Shown one piece after another: positions 6,948 through 62,263 of a DNA stretch of 64,000 nt. Made by a program: the position numbers and the translations under genes. The notes under the pieces were generated by a model. It was not told where the DNA came from, made no database searches, and worked only from the letters and a program-made list of their open reading frames with translations. The stretch's first letter is position 1; each line of letters begins with the position of its first letter. The DNA is taken from the sequence record MW735835.1, one strand, 5' to 3'.

Positions 6948-6980
6948 CATAGAGGAGGGGTTCGCCCCTCCTCTATGCCG
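6948..6980 (+). terminator. hairpin with TATGCCG tail
   Basis: Perfect 13-bp stem CATAGAGGAGGGG/CCCCTCCTCTATG, TTCG loop, no U-tract. Confidence 0.7.
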
Positions 6981-13190: not shown

Positions 13191-13200
13191 GACGTGGCTT

Positions 13201-13229
13201 GAGGGGGCCTTCGGGCCCTCTCTATGCCC
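13201..13229 (+). terminator. hairpin with TATGCC tail
   Basis: GAGGGGGCC-TTCG-GGCCCTCTC then TATGCCC. Confidence 0.7.
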
Positions 13230-20923: not shown

Positions 20924-21100
20924 GTGGAAGTGTCACTCAAAGCAATCCTGTTCTTCGCAACGCTGTTCCTCATCATCTCCTTCTGTACGTTGGAGGTGAA
21001 AAGAAAAGAGTGGGTCGACATGATCCGCATCATGCAGTGTGTCTTCTTCGGGGCCATCATCTGCATGTCCTTGACCGGGCTAGACATAGCCGGTTTTTAA
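20924..21100 (+). CDS. small 2-TM membrane protein
   Basis: GTG after GAGGGG; two hydrophobic helices. Confidence 0.55.
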   Translation: MEVSLKAILFFATLFLIISFCTLEVKRKEWVDMIRIMQCVFFGAIICMSLTGLDIAGF

Positions 21101-21177
21101 GTACCTTGTGTGCATCATCTATGACAAACACTCGGGCTGAGGACACATCCTCAGCCCACTATTCCGAGGTACCGGTA

Positions 21178-21585
21178 ATGAATGCTTTTGGTATCAAGCA
21201 AGCCACTCTTCCTAAAGCTCCTGTCACCTGTGGCCGGATCATCGTCACGATGCCCACTCTGGAGCACGTGAAGGCTCTCCAGTTTCTGCTGAAGGACAAT
21301 GGCATCAGTCAGGAAGAGCCCATCCGTTACGAGGATTTCATCGCCAAGCCGAGTGATTACCCGGACAAGACCCGGTTGATCTGGCTGTTCCTCGAGAACC
21401 CGATGCAAATCTACTCAGTGATGGACCCGTTGACCATGTTCATGTGCGACGAGATCTTCGCTCTGGTTGGCAGGGCGGTCATTGTAACGCGCGACCAGTC
21501 TGGCAAACGCTGGGGCGTCAATGATGGTCCGTCGACGGAACACCTCGGTCAGTTCTGGGATGCGTTCGCTTACGTGAACCGTTAA
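21178..21585 (+). CDS. hypothetical protein
   Basis: Start ATG 21178 after GAGGT; TATG at 21120. Confidence 0.7.
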   Translation: MNAFGIKQATLPKAPVTCGRIIVTMPTLEHVKALQFLLKDNGISQEEPIRYEDFIAKPSDYPDKTRLIWLFLENPMQIYSVMDPLTMFMCDEIFALVGRAVIVTRDQSGKRWGVNDGPSTEHLGQFWDAFAYVNR

Positions 21586-21634
21586 TAAAACCATCTGTCT
21601 GATCATCTATAGACAATAATAGCAAGGGGCCACC

Positions 21635-22360
21635 ATGTACAAACGTAAAGACACGATCGCCTTGGAGGCGGTGTTGTTGGAGAAGGGCTTGGATCTAAAC
21701 ACCGAGCTGGAGATCCTGGATGCCTGCAAACCTACGGCGAAAGATCTGTACGCTTCCCTGGCTTGTGCTCGCCGCCTGTTAGGCTATGGCATTGCTGTGC
21801 CGAACGTAACCATCGAACCCCGCAACACTTTGGTCGTGATGCAAGATATCGCGCTCAAGGGCGCTGACGGGGTCCACCTGGTCGTACGGACACAGTTCGA
21901 TGAGAACCTGCACCTAGACCGCTGTGACGTCATTATCAAAGGCGTTGTGCTCAAGGATCAAGGCCCTCGGGGCGGTGAACACACCGGCTACCTGTACTCC
22001 AAAGTGGAGATCACGACACTGGTTACGGTAACGCAGCTACTCGCTACGTTCGTCACTGACCTGTTCAAGCTGGTCTTCAACAGTGAATACGAAGAGGACC
22101 TGGTCCACATGGTCCTTCTCGAGGGTGTCGAGCTGAAGCGCGATCTGCCGATCCACTTCGCCAATCACTACCATGATGTCATCCTCAAGGACCACCCGTC
22201 CGTTGATGATCCGATTGGGGGTTACCCCGACCTGATCAAAGTGGCAGCGCTGTTGTTCCATCGCAACTGTCCAGACCAGGACAGCGTGATGTTCGTTCTC
22301 GAAAAGGGCGAAGAAGACGGCCATGCGGTCCTTGCCGTTCAGGTAGAGGAAGAGGCTTAA
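21635..22360 (+). CDS. hypothetical protein
   Basis: 241 aa, AAGGGG RBS. Confidence 0.75.
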   Translation: MYKRKDTIALEAVLLEKGLDLNTELEILDACKPTAKDLYASLACARRLLGYGIAVPNVTIEPRNTLVVMQDIALKGADGVHLVVRTQFDENLHLDRCDVIIKGVVLKDQGPRGGEHTGYLYSKVEITTLVTVTQLLATFVTDLFKLVFNSEYEEDLVHMVLLEGVELKRDLPIHFANHYHDVILKDHPSVDDPIGGYPDLIKVAALLFHRNCPDQDSVMFVLEKGEEDGHAVLAVQVEEEA

Positions 22361-22425
22361 CGGCCTTGACCCAGGGGAGGATGATCTTATGACACAATCC
22401 AATAAAGTAACTTCGGGTATTGTCT

Positions 22426-22911
22426 ATGGATCGAACTCCCCTGGCGCTTTGGGCTAAGCACCTCATAAGGGCCGCCATTGACTACTTCAATGAACGCTCG
22501 ACCAAAGCCTGTCTTATCGTTGACAACACCATTCTCAAGGATGGGGTCCTGGCCGCAATGGCTCAGGAGAACAACAGCAGTGACTTCATTGTCTGTGTCG
22601 CACCGGGTTTCACCACCCAGTTAGATTTCGGAGACGCTGATCTGACCATCAGTGTGAAGTTCCACGATGCTGCCCATTCAATGGTCATCCCGTACCACGC
22701 GATTCGTGCAGTGATTGCTGCCGACAGCGGTGGTGTGCTGACCGAGAACGGCCACATTAACATCATCAGCGTCCCGCCGGTTGTGTACCCGCCTGCGTCC
22801 CGCTACCGTAATGAAGAAGAACTGGACAAGATTGCTCAGCAAGTGGTAGAGGAAGAAGTCCATGCCCAGCCCACGCAGTCTGAGCTTCAGCTAGTTGTAC
22901 GGAGATCATGA
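22426..22911 (+). CDS. divergent SspB-fold protein
   Basis: HLIRAAIDY...LIVDNT aligns to SspB YLLRAFYEW...LVVDVT; VCVAP..TQLDFGDADLTISVKF...MVIPYHAIRAVIAADSG aligns to LNIAP..GNLELANDEVRFNARF...VSVPLAAVLAIYARENG. Confidence 0.6.
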   Translation: MDRTPLALWAKHLIRAAIDYFNERSTKACLIVDNTILKDGVLAAMAQENNSSDFIVCVAPGFTTQLDFGDADLTISVKFHDAAHSMVIPYHAIRAVIAADSGGVLTENGHINIISVPPVVYPPASRYRNEEELDKIAQQVVEEEVHAQPTQSELQLVVRRS

Positions 22912-22918
22912 GGAAACA

Positions 22919-23230
22919 ATGGTCGCACAAGTCTGGAATGACACCTTCGGGAAACTTGAGTCCTTTACTCAGGAACTGGAGAGAGTCAAGTCTTACGTAG
23001 CCCTGTCCGAACTCAAGCCGCTGTGGCGGATCATGAAGTCGATTCAGTTGCGCTACCTTCCTGTGCTGGACGAGGATCTTTCTCGTCGGCTTGAGAAGAT
23101 GATTGAGAAGCTGGAGATTCAGGACGTGACGCCCACGGCCTACTCCGAAGATGCTGCTCGCACCATGTTAGGTAACCTCGGGTACTCGTGCTCCATCGAC
23201 CCAGATTCCTTCGATGAGGAAGATCGTTAA
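22919..23230 (+). CDS. hypothetical protein
   Basis: ATG 22919 after GAGG. Confidence 0.7.
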   Translation: MVAQVWNDTFGKLESFTQELERVKSYVALSELKPLWRIMKSIQLRYLPVLDEDLSRRLEKMIEKLEIQDVTPTAYSEDAARTMLGNLGYSCSIDPDSFDEEDR

Positions 23231-23276
23231 GTCCTTGTCGTCCCACCCAAGCCAACACCAGTAGTAAGGGAACACC

Positions 23277-23930
23277 ATGAAGAAAGAGAACATTCCCAAT
23301 CCGCGTACTTTCCTCGGTCACCCGATCGTGTTCGTCGACTCGTACGAGCAAGTCGGCCGGATCGTTGCCACCCAGGGTCACATTGGCGAGTTCTTCGTTA
23401 TCGGAGACAACGTCAAGAAGCCTGGCGCGGCTGTCGAAGCGATTTTCAAAGATCACTTCGTCAAGCAATTCCGCATTCGTTCTTCTGGTTCATGGAATTC
23501 CCTGTTCCGAGCCATGGCTGACGTCGACACTGCACGTGAGGATGGTACTCACTACAGTGAGGCTCGCGACCTGATGTTCGTCTCGTTGCATTCGCCCCAC
23601 GACATCAGCTCGGCACTGAACCGTCATCGCGCACTGAACAACATCACGTGCCGCGAGATGTACTGGCTCGACACCATCCACCTCGGTGAAGAAGCCGACG
23701 ACCTGGTTGACATGGCCCTCAAGACCATGCCCTCGGTCATCACCCCGGTCCGTTACTCTGACCTGACCATTGCTCAGCGTTTCGACCTGACCGCCTTCGA
23801 GTTCGCTCGTTTCATGCGACCGATCCATTGTGTGGATTCGGTGGACAACAGTTACAAGGGTGCTCCGTTCTACCCCGACCTCGTGATCAGTGGCCAGTTC
23901 AAGCTGCCTAACCGCATCACACCTGACTAA
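23277..23930 (+). CDS. hypothetical protein
   Basis: 217 aa, AAGGGA RBS. Confidence 0.75.
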   Translation: MKKENIPNPRTFLGHPIVFVDSYEQVGRIVATQGHIGEFFVIGDNVKKPGAAVEAIFKDHFVKQFRIRSSGSWNSLFRAMADVDTAREDGTHYSEARDLMFVSLHSPHDISSALNRHRALNNITCREMYWLDTIHLGEEADDLVDMALKTMPSVITPVRYSDLTIAQRFDLTAFEFARFMRPIHCVDSVDNSYKGAPFYPDLVISGQFKLPNRITPD

Positions 23931-23933
23931 TGC

Positions 23934-23965
23934 GAGGGGCTTCGGCCCCTCCTTCCTTTTCTTTT
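23934..23965 (+). terminator. intrinsic terminator
   Basis: GAGGGGC-TTCG-GCCCCTC, pyrimidine/T tail. Confidence 0.7.
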
Positions 23966-23977
23966 GAGAACACTGTT

Positions 23978-24256
23978 ATGATGACGCACTACCAACACCA
24001 GGATGATCACATCGTCATTGGTTCTGTCGCCGGTGACGAGGAAGCTCTGGCCAGCCTACTGAACAAGTTCAGTGACGCCGGTATCCAGCCCACGTTGATC
24101 AACCTGATCCATGAGGATGATCTGCACCTGATGATGGTGCACCACAAGGGCTTCGACGAAGCCACCTTGGCCGACCCGCAGAAAGCTCTGGCCAAGGTGA
24201 AAGAGATCCTCAATCCTTTCGCTGACGGCTTCACGGTCGCCCCTGAACAGCCGTAA
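23978..24256 (+). CDS. hypothetical protein
   Basis: Start moved to ATG 23978; the longer track ORF runs through the terminator. Confidence 0.7.
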   Translation: MMTHYQHQDDHIVIGSVAGDEEALASLLNKFSDAGIQPTLINLIHEDDLHLMMVHHKGFDEATLADPQKALAKVKEILNPFADGFTVAPEQP

Positions 24257-24265
24257 GGAGCCATT

Positions 24266-24298
24266 ATGTCATTCCACGAGGGTCACTACACACGCTAG
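24266..24298 (+). CDS. candidate 10-aa leader peptide MSFHEGHYTR
   Basis: TAAGGAG RBS 5 nt before ATG; the G of its TAG is the first base of a hairpin containing the downstream GGAGG. Confidence 0.5.
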   Translation: MSFHEGHYTR

Positions 24299-24330
24299 CC
24301 TCCATCATGTCGATGGAGGCGCGAAAGTGA

Positions 24331-24594
24331 GTGACCAAGATGTCTTACGACAAAGTATCCAAGCGCCTCAAGCGCCATCAGGATGCAGTGGCTGTGAATC
24401 AGCAACTGGCTATCTGCAAGTTTCACGAAGCGGTCGTGACGGAACCTTCTGGAGTCTTCCGTAAACGACATGCGCTGAACTGCGGACGGTCCAAATGCTT
24501 TCTTTGCTCCAATCCGCGGCGGCGGTTTAAAGCCATTACCTTGCCTGAACGTAGGGTAAACGAGGCGATGAAGTACGAACTGTTGTTCATCTAA
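24331..24594 (+). CDS. small basic putative Zn-binding phage protein
   Basis: HALNCGRSKCFLCSNPRR motif. Confidence 0.7.
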   Translation: MTKMSYDKVSKRLKRHQDAVAVNQQLAICKFHEAVVTEPSGVFRKRHALNCGRSKCFLCSNPRRRFKAITLPERRVNEAMKYELLFI

Positions 24595-24595
24595 A

Positions 24596-24628
24596 CATAG
24601 AGGGAGGCTTCGGCCTCCCTCTATGCCG
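24596..24628 (+). terminator. hairpin with TATGCCG tail
   Basis: Perfect 13-bp stem, TTCG loop, no U-tract. Confidence 0.7.
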
Positions 24629-24688
24629 TGACACAAGTGTTTTTGAACAAACCTGACCTATTCGATAGGTAACCAAGAGGATGCCGTC

Positions 24689-24976
24689 ATGGATTATTTT
24701 CACGTCTTTCGACAAGAAGGTCCGGTGTGCGTCTGCTTGACTCAATCACCGAACCACATCTATCAATGGGATAAATCTCGCGACTATGTGGCCAGTCATG
24801 TCATTGAGTTGCATGGTAAATGTTATCACTTGTTCATCTCGGGTGCTGAGAACATGACCATGCTTCGACAAGACAAGCACGCGGCGACTCGATTCGCTCG
24901 AGATTTCATCTGCAAAGGCAACGATGAATTTCTGGATATTGCTCGTATCCTGTTTAACCATCCGAGGAAGTTTTAA
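24689..24976 (+). CDS. hypothetical protein
   Basis: 95 aa, GAGGA RBS. Confidence 0.65.
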   Translation: MDYFHVFRQEGPVCVCLTQSPNHIYQWDKSRDYVASHVIELHGKCYHLFISGAENMTMLRQDKHAATRFARDFICKGNDEFLDIARILFNHPRKF

Positions 24977-25567
24977 GTGGCGACCAAACAACAAAAGAAA
25001 ATGAAGAAGGCGCGCAAGATGCGCGAGAAACAGATCAAAGTCTTCTGGGGTATTGGATTTCTGATCGTGCTGGCAATTGGCCTTGTCTGGGCCAAACCGA
25101 GCCATGCAGCGGTGGTCGTGTCCCGTCCGGTCATAGTGGCCAGGCCAGCGGTCACACCACCGCCACCTCGGGTATCGCCCACTCGTGTGTCCAGCACACC
25201 GACCCCCAAAGCAGCCACTGCCACCGGTGCTCACCCTACGCAACGCTATAGCTCCAGCCTGAGCGGTAGTTCGTCCTCGCCGACGTTCTTGCCGATGTAC
25301 ATCCCGATCTACCTGCCGAGTGCTTCAACTCCTGGTACGGTCGAGAAAGTCGATGTGGCCACTCCCATGTTGACCAAGTGCACGCAGGAGCAGTTCCAGC
25401 AGGCGAAGCTGTGGCAGCAGGACTGCAAGCAGCTGGAAGACATCAGTGACCGTTACTGTCCGATCCTGTCGTACTTCCGTTACTGTAAGGAGGCCCAGCC
25501 TGACGAGATCAAAGAACTCAAGCAGGCAGGTCCGAACTACAAGCACGTCTACCTGATCCCGGAGTGA
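24977..25567 (+). CDS. membrane-anchored or secreted Pro/Ser/Thr-rich protein
   Basis: Basic N-terminus, TM/signal ending SHA, low-complexity linker, four C-terminal Cys. Confidence 0.7.
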   Translation: MATKQQKKMKKARKMREKQIKVFWGIGFLIVLAIGLVWAKPSHAAVVVSRPVIVARPAVTPPPPRVSPTRVSSTPTPKAATATGAHPTQRYSSSLSGSSSSPTFLPMYIPIYLPSASTPGTVEKVDVATPMLTKCTQEQFQQAKLWQQDCKQLEDISDRYCPILSYFRYCKEAQPDEIKELKQAGPNYKHVYLIPE

Positions 25568-36639: not shown

Positions 36640-36641
36640 TC

Positions 36642-36671
36642 GAGGGAGCCTTCGGGCTCCCTCTTATGCCG
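36642..36671 (+). terminator. hairpin with TTATGCCG tail
   Basis: GAGGGAGCC-TTCG-GGCTCCCTC. Confidence 0.7.
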
Positions 36672-45549: not shown

Positions 45550-45556
45550 TAAGCAT

Positions 45557-45591
45557 GGGCGGGGTAATCCCCGCCCTTATGCCCTTTTTTC
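45557..45591 (+). terminator. hairpin with TTATGCCC and T-run
   Basis: GGGCGGGG/CCCCGCCC stem. Confidence 0.75.
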
Positions 45592-47156: not shown

Positions 47157-47513
47157 GTGAGCAAATCTGAGGAACCGATTGTCGTCATCAAATGGCTACA
47201 CTCGTCCTCGGGCCGCAGTAAACGCAGCGAGATCGTCAACCAAGGATGCTTCGTGCTCGAGCACGAAGCTACCGGGCGCTTCTATCTGGGCCAGAGCGAC
47301 AACGTCAGCAAAGACGTCGATAAACAACTTTCCCAACTGGCAAACGGCAAGCACCCGAACAAGATCCTGAACGTCCTCTACGAGAAGGACAACGAGATCC
47401 GGGTGTTCGAATATCCACAGAAGGCAAAGAAGAAACGCGTAACCCTCATGCGTGAGCTGATTGAGAAGGCCGGCTACCTTTGCCTAAATCCAAGAGATGT
47501 CCGCAATGTATAA
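47157..47513 (+). CDS. degenerate GIY-YIG-like protein
   Basis: GCFVLEH..TGRFYLGQS.NV...L..GKHPNK.L..LY; lacks the first Tyr and the Arg. Confidence 0.6.
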   Translation: MSKSEEPIVVIKWLHSSSGRSKRSEIVNQGCFVLEHEATGRFYLGQSDNVSKDVDKQLSQLANGKHPNKILNVLYEKDNEIRVFEYPQKAKKKRVTLMRELIEKAGYLCLNPRDVRNV

Positions 47514-48012
47514 AGACCTGAAGCTTCCCAAGCTGGTGCAGCAGATTCTCCTGGTCACCCGTGACCACATTCTTTCTTCGTCCGCCAAGTGCCACATGTT
47601 GGTGCTGGCGACTCCCAAGTTCCTCAAGGACAATCCGCACCTGAAGCCGAGCGCGTTCGAACACGCGATCTTCGGCCCGGTCGTGGTCCTGAACATCACC
47701 CCGCAAGCGATCGGCCCGATCACCTTGGGTGATGACTTCATCAGCTTCGAAGCCCGCTACAGTGGTGCCCTGCTGACCAACTTCGTGACCATGGGTGACA
47801 TCGTTGGCTTGTATTCGCCAGAAGAAGGCTCGGTCATGATCGACGTCGGTGTGGTCAACCTCATCGGTGATACCGGCATGGGTGACGGCAGTGTCGGCAT
47901 GATTGCTGCCCGTCCGCTGAACAGCTACGAGCCGGCAGAATCCGAAGCCCAGGTCCAAACCCAACCCGTTCAACCGCCGCGTGAGCGCCCTAGCCTGAAG
48001 GTAGTCAAATGA
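47497..48012 (+). CDS. sspB: SspB-like ClpXP adaptor with intact ClpX-binding tail
   Basis: VVLNITPQAIGPITLGDDFISFEARYSG...IVGLYSPEEG; C-terminus PPRERPSLKVVK. Confidence 0.85.
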   Translation: MSAMYKDLKLPKLVQQILLVTRDHILSSSAKCHMLVLATPKFLKDNPHLKPSAFEHAIFGPVVVLNITPQAIGPITLGDDFISFEARYSGALLTNFVTMGDIVGLYSPEEGSVMIDVGVVNLIGDTGMGDGSVGMIAARPLNSYEPAESEAQVQTQPVQPPRERPSLKVVK

Positions 48013-54236: not shown

Positions 54237-54242
54237 TCCTCA

Positions 54243-54273
54243 CGGCACTCCTTCGGGGGTGCCGTTTATGCCG
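54243..54273 (+). terminator. hairpin with TTTATGCCG tail
   Basis: CGGCACTCC-TTCG-GGGGTGCCG. Confidence 0.7.
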
Positions 54274-61033: not shown

Positions 61034-62263
61034 ATGCCTGCACAAGTCAACATCAACAACTACGACAACCACCTCGTGATCACCGCCACCGACCAGAGCA
61101 ATCTGGTGGATCATGTCCCGGCGATGGTCTACAAGGCAGTGTTGCGTCCGTACGGCATCGTGCTGATCAAGGACCGTCCGACCTTCACCCTTCCGCAACT
61201 GCGCTTCGGTCGCCATAAGCGTTTCTTCACCCAGATCAGTAACAGCTATGACCGCGATGGCCGTGGCACTGGCGTGCTGTTGGCTGGTGAAAAGGGCACC
61301 GGTAAGTCGCTGATGGCGGAAGAACTGGGCGCCTGGATGATCAAGCAGGACCTGCCGGTGATCATGGTCAGCGAACCCATGTCGGCTGAAGACCTGTCGG
61401 TCGTCATTAAGGCTGTCGGGCCGTGCATGGTGCTCTTCGACGAGTTCGGTAAGGTGTATCACGATGTCCACGAGCGTGAACGCCTGCTGACCCTGTTCTC
61501 GGACACCTCGTTCGTCGGTGTGATGTTCGTCATCACGGGCAACGCTGCCAGTGAGTTCTCCGAGTTCCTGGTTCACCGCCCTCAGCGGTTCCTCTACTGC
61601 ATCAACTACCACAGTGGTGTGGACGAGGAGACCATGGAAGACATCCTTACCACCATGCAGGTCAAGCCGGAGATGCATGAGCTGTTCCGCGAGTACCGGG
61701 TCGATAGCCGTACCCTGAACATCGACTCGCTCATGTGCGTCGTGCGTCAGTCGGCGGACTGCAAGACCCCGGAGGAGCTTGTAGAGCGTTGCGAGATCCT
61801 CAACGTACCGGAACTTCCTAAGAAGCGCTGGTACATCAAGGATGTCGTTCAGCTCAGCACGGACACCGAGGAAGTCAAGCCGTTTGGCTGGGACTTCAAC
61901 GCGAACCGTGTAGGCTTCATCGGCCTGATCGAAGGACGTGTGATGGAAGCCCGCCATATTCGCGATCCAGAGGGCCGTCGTACGTCTGTCGAGTACCAAG
62001 TCTCTGCTGACAACAGCGACGTCAAGATCGTCGTAGAAGGCATGCGCACTTTCGAGGTAACCCTCACTTACGGTTACATGCGCCCATGCTTTGATGCTGT
62101 GAAGCATGGTGAGCCGCACCCTGAGGCGGTTCTTACCAGAGAAAACAACCTCATGGTCCCTTCACGGGCAGGTGGTTTTGGTACGTTCCATTCCGAGGCC
62201 ACCGTGGATAGCGGCTCGCCGCGTGAACCGTGGCGAGCCGTTCAACCGGCAGGCCGTCATTAA
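61034..62263 (+). CDS. AAA+ ATPase
   Basis: Walker A GEKGTGKS, Walker B MVLFDEF, sensor-1 ITGN, Arg-finger HRPQRF. Confidence 0.9.
   Translation: MPAQVNINNYDNHLVITATDQSNLVDHVPAMVYKAVLRPYGIVLIKDRPTFTLPQLRFGRHKRFFTQISNSYDRDGRGTGVLLAGEKGTGKSLMAEELGAWMIKQDLPVIMVSEPMSAEDLSVVIKAVGPCMVLFDEFGKVYHDVHERERLLTLFSDTSFVGVMFVITGNAASEFSEFLVHRPQRFLYCINYHSGVDEETMEDILTTMQVKPEMHELFREYRVDSRTLNIDSLMCVVRQSADCKTPEELVERCEILNVPELPKKRWYIKDVVQLSTDTEEVKPFGWDFNANRVGFIGLIEGRVMEARHIRDPEGRRTSVEYQVSADNSDVKIVVEGMRTFEVTLTYGYMRPCFDAVKHGEPHPEAVLTRENNLMVPSRAGGFGTFHSEATVDSGSPREPWRAVQPAGRH

Follow-up and report, generated by a model that had tools for sequence, protein, structure and literature searches.

Gene PA10_00227 of Pseudomonas phage pPa_SNUABM_DT01 (MW735835.1), whose product (QTH80425.1) is labeled "hypothetical protein" in GenBank, encodes a protein that truly belongs to the SspB family of adaptors, though it has diverged strongly, and that a single clade of jumbo phages related to phiKZ has retained. 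The role that we rank as most likely, with a probability of about 0.5, is that of an adaptor or competitor directed at the ClpXP protease of the host and equipped with a cargo of its own. DT01 has a genome of 265.5 kb and P. aeruginosa as its host; it is described as a jumbo phage that has multisubunit RNA polymerases of both the virion and the non-virion kind and falls into one cluster with Noxifer and phiKZ (PMC8541153). Our analysis covers a stretch of 64,000 nucleotides of this genome (the window), of which positions 21000–25000 match the DT01 record at 100% identity. A second SspB-like gene, PA10_00271, lies in the same window; we refer to that gene and its orthologs as type 1, and to PA10_00227 and its homologs as type 2.

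The open reading frame of PA10_00227 begins with an ATG at 22426 and ends with a stop codon at 22909–22911 (plus strand, 161 residues). Its homologs begin with the same Met-Asp, so this ATG, and not the TTG at 22420, is taken as the start. Homologous clusters number 21 in a word-indexed search and 41 in a search with a profile; homolog lengths are 126–172 residues (155–172 in all but one), and identity to the DT01 protein ranges from 35% to 86% in a 40-sequence alignment. Many of these homologs are carried by contigs of 160–277 kb, and the gene is found in 11 jumbo-phage genomes of IMG/VR, ten of them 250–277 kb in size and one a partial contig of 164 kb. The gene is under purifying selection (dN/dS of 0.07–0.12 by the Nei-Gojobori method, unsaturated pairs). 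Among isolated phages other than DT01, a tblastn search of 50,697 phage records revealed no detectable relative of either type.

Searches with the single sequence give weak but consistent evidence for a relation to SspB, and the evidence at family level is strong. The Pfam SspB family (PF04386) matches residues 63–100 with an E-value of 0.0025 and 18.3 bits, short of the gathering cut-off of 27 bits; the same family is matched at E<0.1 by 13 of 21 type-2 members (best 9e-6), and a precomputed PF04386 match is present in two type-2 relatives. PHROG 8945 ("SspB-like") matches residues 11–98 with an E-value of 0.0079 and 17 bits, compared with 5.1e-9 over the full length of type 1. In a phmmer search of the PDB with PA10_00227, SspB chains take the top five places and nine of the 14 listed, with collinear alignments over residues 2–103, and a profile built from 21 type-2 sequences finds SspB chains only (best E-value 7e-4). 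Comparison by hhalign of the 40-sequence type-2 alignment with E. coli SspB gives 96.2% (E = 2.8e-9, 104 columns), and comparison with a bacterial SspB profile, made from 29 diverse gammaproteobacterial sequences taken from genomes, gives 97.2% (E = 4.4e-11, residues 8–110). An earlier note on this DNA, made from the letters alone, had claimed an SspB-fold protein that aligns across the whole SspB domain and had proposed a profile search against the SspB family; the Pfam score is below threshold, but the profile-to-profile match bears the claim out.

Structure prediction agrees. An AlphaFold2 model computed from the alignment of 40 sequences reaches a mean pLDDT of 75, with values of about 70–91 (mostly 84–91) over residues 11–100; a single-sequence AlphaFold model (pLDDT 45) was unusable. 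The top 13 Foldseek matches of the AlphaFold2 model are all SspB (E-values of 1e-6 to 7e-5). An exhaustive VIA-align search gives Z-scores of 11.8 to both 1ou9_A and 8et3_Z (SspB of H. influenzae and E. coli, respectively; rmsd of 2.0 Å over 103 residues for 8et3_Z), followed by alphaproteobacterial SspBs at 7.4–7.7 and then by unrelated small barrels at no more than 4.2. The protein is thus predicted to have the fold of the SspB substrate-binding domain (an N-terminal helix plus a beta domain); a non-SspB fold, which the earlier note had named as the outcome that would count against its claim, is not what the model resembles. A chance likeness to SspB, or an open reading frame without function, could appeal to the Pfam score below the gathering threshold, but about 40 homologous clusters, the dN/dS of 0.07–0.12, conserved synteny and the specificity of the structural match (Z of 11.8, with the next fold at 4.2) refute this explanation, and we give it practically no weight.

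The description of the gene as cryptic, also made in the earlier note, holds for the GenBank record but not elsewhere, since several type-2 homologs from metagenomes already carry an SspB label given by the NCBI and JGI pipelines. In the annotation of PA10_00227, "SspB-like protein" could take the place of "hypothetical protein."

Table 1. Coordinates of the two SspB-like genes, the parts of the type-2 protein and the promoter-like motifs in the window
Feature	Coordinates	Strand	Evidence
Type-2 SspB-like CDS, PA10_00227 (161 aa + stop)	22426..22911	+	ORF; GenBank CDS
SspB-type cargo-binding domain, residues 1–118: N-terminal helix (8–23) + beta domain	22426..22779	+	AF2, Foldseek, VIA-align, hhalign 8–110
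Variable net-acidic linker, residues 119–147, low confidence	22780..22866	+	Conservation, charge count, pLDDT 56–67
Conserved C-terminal peptide QPtQsELQLVVRRS, residues 148–161, candidate docking motif	22867..22908	+	Conservation
Type-1 SspB-like gene, PA10_00271 (171 aa, tail ...RPSLKVVK)	47497..48012 (GenBank start 47506)	+	PHROG 8945, E 5e-9
TATGAC promoter-like motif	22388..22393	+	TATG core 22388–22391; in 65-nt gap before gene
Hairpin + (T)TATGCC modules	6950–6979, 13200–13228, 24597–24627, 36641–36670, 45556–45583, 54240–54272		

SspB proteins are built to a modular plan in which the domain holds the cargo and the tail tethers SspB to the N-domain of ClpX. The layout of type 2 is this plan: the domain is followed by an acidic linker of variable sequence, and the protein ends in a conserved peptide of 10–14 residues. 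Over the 40 sequences, the mean frequency of the top residue per column is 0.61–0.78 in the domain, with the highest value in the N-terminal helix (0.78 for residues 8–25); it is 0.37 in the linker (residues 122–147) and rises to 0.69 at residues 148–157. The acidic linker and the SELQLVVRRS ending had both been described in the earlier note, and they are as described, with seven D/E against three K/R in residues 119–147.

In the sampled bacterial SspBs, 43 positions have a conservation of 75% or more, and 40 of these are aligned in type 2, where 13 are identical and 19 similar. Type 2 keeps the scaffold residues L13, R15, A16, F76, P86 and A89. Several invariant residues of bacterial SspB are swapped for residues that are invariant in type 2 (N54 becomes C57, N24 becomes R24 and W20 becomes Y20), Y12 is replaced by histidine in most members, and P28 is replaced as well. 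Good conservation in SspB is confined to the dimer interface and the ssrA-binding groove (PMC9963277), so the type-2 replacements probably affect one or both of these. With these substitutions, type 2 may bind a cargo different from that of bacterial SspB.

The tail of type 2 has the consensus QPxQxELQLVx(R/K)(R/K). The canonical L-x-phi-phi-K-COOH ending is present in none of the 40 members, in agreement with the earlier note, which had read the DT01 ending as a variant resembling a degenerate L(R/K)VVK, and the (R/K)-P that precedes the docking motif is also absent; by comparison, 25 of 29 sampled gammaproteobacterial SspBs end in canonical (R/K)-P-x-L-(K/R/T)-(V/I/L)-(V/I)-K-COOH. In the alignment of 40 sequences, Q148, P149 and Q151 each reach a conservation of 90% or more; in the set of 21 closer members, L156 does so too, and L154 never varies. 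QPxQ occurs in 32 of the 40 members and the L-x-(L/V)-V spacing followed by R/K in 26. The hydrophobic pair L154/V157, with the i/i+3 spacing of L161/V164 in the E. coli peptide, is likewise followed by basic residues, and two to four extra residues lie between the motif and the C-terminus; in the most divergent members only a loose ending of a hydrophobic pair plus basic residues is left. The tail is conserved and plausibly a docking peptide, yet it is not the known one, and we treat it as a candidate.

If this tail no longer docks on ClpX, type 2 could be a sequestering decoy or anti-adaptor, whose domain binds SspB-type clients. These would be ssrA-tagged proteins or an anti-sigma fragment of the MucA/RseA type, which would be kept from ClpXP or turned over more slowly during infection. 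The loss of the canonical docking ending from all 40 members alongside a well-conserved domain, and the retention of the SspB scaffold residues listed above, speak for such a decoy, and competitive inhibition has been proposed before for the SspB of phage pf16 (PMC5587285). A functionless tail should drift like the linker, however, and the end block is conserved like the domain (0.69 against 0.37 for the linker); the replacement of several polar residues that never vary in bacterial SspB also speaks against an unchanged client specificity. We consider the decoy unlikely, although it stands first among the alternatives.

Another explanation for so conserved a tail is that its dock is not the ClpX N-domain but a different partner, such as another host unfoldase or a factor encoded by the phage; the SspB fold would then have been re-used as the peptide-binding module of another pathway. 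The type-2 motif is longer than the ClpX-docking peptide and unlike it, with QPxQ in most members, and type 2 is better conserved than type 1 (35–86% identity, n = 40, against 19–33% in a smaller set, n = 9). Against this, no candidate partner was identified, the conserved neighboring genes belong to no recognizable family, and the order of hydrophobic and then basic residues still resembles the ClpX-docking peptide; we consider this explanation unlikely as well and place it just behind the decoy. Docking of the type-2 tail on ClpX would find a parallel among the alphaproteobacteria. The SspB of Caulobacter crescentus (PDB 2QAS/2QAZ), a cellular, single-copy adaptor, has diverged but shares the fold of type 2 (Z of 7.4), and its tail is apparently unlike QPxQxELQLV. 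According to what is reported from the Chien and Baker laboratories, the ClpX-docking tail of Caulobacter SspB has different sequence determinants; it would set a precedent for tails that vary in sequence yet keep binding to the ClpX N-domain.

Type 1 carries the GenBank label "putative ClpXP protease specificity-enhancing factor." In the earlier note, PA10_00227 is the second SspB-fold protein of this phage beside the gene at 47497, and this holds. The type-1 product matches the bacterial SspB profile at 98.9% (hhalign, E = 1.3e-17), belongs to the same fold family as type 2 and has a similar length (171 and 161 residues), but its tail, unlike that of type 2, is canonical. L-x-x-V-K-COOH is invariant in all nine type-1 orthologs, and the last eight residues of the DT01 protein are identical to those of two sampled gammaproteobacterial SspBs. 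A GIY-YIG homing-endonuclease gene (47157–47513) overlaps the start of the type-1 open reading frame, which has an in-frame ATG at 47497 in addition to the GenBank start at 47506.

Type 1 and type 2 are 20% identical (BLASTP E = 0.044) and match each other at 87% in a profile–profile comparison (E = 3.9e-6). Each is nearer to bacterial SspB (97–99%) than to the other, so the two are old, separate lineages; the term "paralog" applied to them in the earlier note is loose, and the pair does not stem from a recent duplication. As judged from sequence identity, which is 19–33% among the nine type-1 orthologs compared with 35–86% to the DT01 protein for the 40 type-2 sequences, type 2 is the slower-evolving copy, and type 1 drifts faster.

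SspB forms dimers, and no segment of type 2 is better conserved than the N-terminal helix (0.78). Type 2 might therefore form a dominant-negative heterodimer with type 1 or with host SspB through this helix, leaving one canonical tail per dimer and weakening bivalent tethering to ClpX. The helix sequences of type 1 and type 2, however, have little in common. Type 1 is present in eight of 11 related genomes that carry type 2, and it was not found in three others that are complete by CheckV (G001–G003) in a search with the type-1 profile at E≤1, with positive controls at 1e-55. Type 2 does not need type 1, since these three genomes have type 2 alone; this weakens the case for an obligate heterodimer, or for a decoy that acts on the other copy. 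The earlier note had raised both possibilities, and as the main role of type 2 they are less likely for this reason; we regard the dominant-negative heterodimer as improbable.

Bacterial SspB (E. coli b3228 and H. influenzae; PDB 1OX9, 1OU9, 1YFN and 8ET3), a ClpXP specificity-enhancing adaptor, shares both fold and plan with type 2, but the two are only about 19–22% identical, with the 13 identities among 40 conserved aligned positions noted above, and the bacterial tail, (R/K)PxL(K/R)VVK-COOH, contrasts with QPxQxELQLVx(R/K)(R/K). The bacterial genomes sampled have a single SspB match in 72 of 81 cases (the tally includes one unpublished genome, on which no claim rests and whose sequence was not used), whereas this phage carries two SspB-like genes.

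SspB-like genes are common in jumbo phages; we know of none for which a function has been demonstrated. A tblastn search with E. coli SspB matches 78 phage records, mostly of jumbo phages, at one place each in every record listed. The proteins gp18 of Pseudomonas phage pf16, gp039 of Erwinia phage RAY and gp232 of phiKZ end in L-(T/R)-V-(V/I)-K, which is the canonical motif or close to it, unlike type 2. By hhalign, phiKZ gp232 and RAY gp039 match type 1 at 90.8% and 85%, respectively, and type 2 at 49% and 3.6%; since they group with type 1, it is type 1 that corresponds to the SspB-like gene found widely among jumbo phages, and type 2 is a separate lineage, seen only in the DT01 clade. The gene for phiKZ gp232 (302 residues, 229299–230207) lies three annotated genes (six CDSs) upstream of thymidylate synthase, a neighborhood like that of type 2, yet the protein groups with type 1, so orthology by position and orthology by sequence disagree. 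The SspB-like protein of RAY, gp039, is cytoplasmic (bioRxiv 10.1101/2023.02.24.529968). Phage genes resembling SspB were thus already known from pf16, RAY and phiKZ.

In the mechanism that we favor, PA10_00227 would probably be transcribed from its own TATG-type phage promoter, and its product would be located in the cytoplasm of the infected cell. The domain would bind a peptide signal other than that read by bacterial SspB, as the altered conserved positions suggest, and the non-canonical tail (hydrophobic L-x-L-V and then basic residues) would dock on the N-domain of host ClpX. Type 2 may in this way steer, or compete for, degradation by ClpXP independently of the canonical-tailed type 1. 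Neither a ClpX zinc-finger domain nor ClpP was found in the DT01 phage genome, so any Clp partner of type 2 would be that of the host. SspB tails bind the ClpX N-domain, and free tail peptide inhibits the degradation of N-domain-dependent substrates (PMC3983244); in P. aeruginosa SspB, tail residues 128–135 are required for ClpX binding (PMC13251409).

A ClpXP-directed role draws on the fold and homology, the modular conservation, the spacing of the tail, selection, a conserved genomic position, host ClpXP as the likely partner and the probably changed cargo site; counted against it are the absence of the canonical tail and of (R/K)-P from all 40 members, the loose ending of the divergent members and the sub-threshold Pfam score. 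Weighed together, these leave the role at about even odds.

A bolder reading, which we hold to be quite doubtful, is that type 2 is a phage-invented branch of SspB whose tail is a new docking signal, either gripping the ClpX N-domain in another way or engaging another unfoldase or peptidase, and whose remodeled groove reads a degron chosen by the phage. This clade of jumbo phages would then run its own channel of targeted degradation, or a block on one, beside an adaptor that mimics that of the host. The DT01 clade in any case offers a natural comparison between type 1, which mimics the ClpX-docking tail of the host and drifts fast, and type 2, which has a different and well-conserved tail and is present even without type 1. 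A side-by-side study of both tails and both domains could help to explain the manipulation of host ClpXP by nucleus-forming phages, and could reveal a new docking peptide or degron for use in degradation tools.

The intergenic gap upstream of PA10_00227 contains a TATGAC motif, which the earlier note had read as a late-type promoter at 22388. On the plus strand of the window, 12 of 25 occurrences of TATG[AC]C are intergenic, compared with 2.15 expected (p = 3e-7; intergenic DNA makes up 8.6% of the window), typically 30–90 nt before a start codon, and all seven occurrences of the longer TTATG[AC]C are intergenic. The late promoters of phiKZ have a TATG core in which the G is the start site (PMC4666361). 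This enrichment and the match to the phiKZ core indicate that the motif is real and promoter-like, as had been claimed, and its "late" timing is assigned by analogy. By the same analogy, the G at 22391 would be position +1, 35 nt before the PA10_00227 start codon. A search for CTTATGAC with one mismatch on both strands yielded no enrichment (23 occurrences against 36 expected), but this test was ill-posed and gave way to the plus-strand count above, which respects strand and position. A scan for sigma-70 promoters and terminators near PA10_00227 found nothing above chance. Elsewhere in the window there is a recurrent intergenic module in which (T)TATGCC follows, within a few bases, a GC-rich hairpin that in many cases has a loop of the CTTCGG type (Table 1); its appearance is that of a terminator set immediately before a promoter of the phiKZ TATG type.

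In two distant relatives that were inspected the gene order is kept, with genes for proteins of about 245 residues, type 2, and proteins of about 100 and 215 residues. The block lies downstream of a thymidylate kinase gene, and a thymidylate synthase gene is located further downstream where the flank extends that far. In DT01, PA10_00227 is flanked upstream by a gene for a 241-residue protein (21635–22360) and downstream, 8 nt after its stop codon, by a gene for a 103-residue protein with an acidic C-terminus (22919–23230). These two genes keep their order in the distant relatives and could encode partners or cargo of type 2. Pfam searches with gp225, gp226, gp228 and gp229 gave no match, nor did PHROG searches with these proteins and gp230, and the ESM Atlas offered no lead for gp226 or gp228. 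The most distant relatives have a BCS1_N/AAA ATPase gene (441 residues; positions 1–1617 of their own sequences) a few genes upstream of type 2. The only Pfam-AAA gene of DT01 (61034–62260) was considered as its counterpart and proved unrelated, so there is no conserved linkage between an AAA gene and type 2.

DNA nearly identical (at least 99%) to positions 21000–24400 of the window is present in metagenome runs from soil, estuary and wastewater in several studies, which indicates that close relatives of DT01, a sewage isolate, are environmentally widespread; where such runs are labeled "RNA," the material is probably DNA. JPTI55, a jumbo phage from compost that resembles DT01, reportedly transduces genomic islands (bioRxiv 10.1101/2024.08.29.610337).
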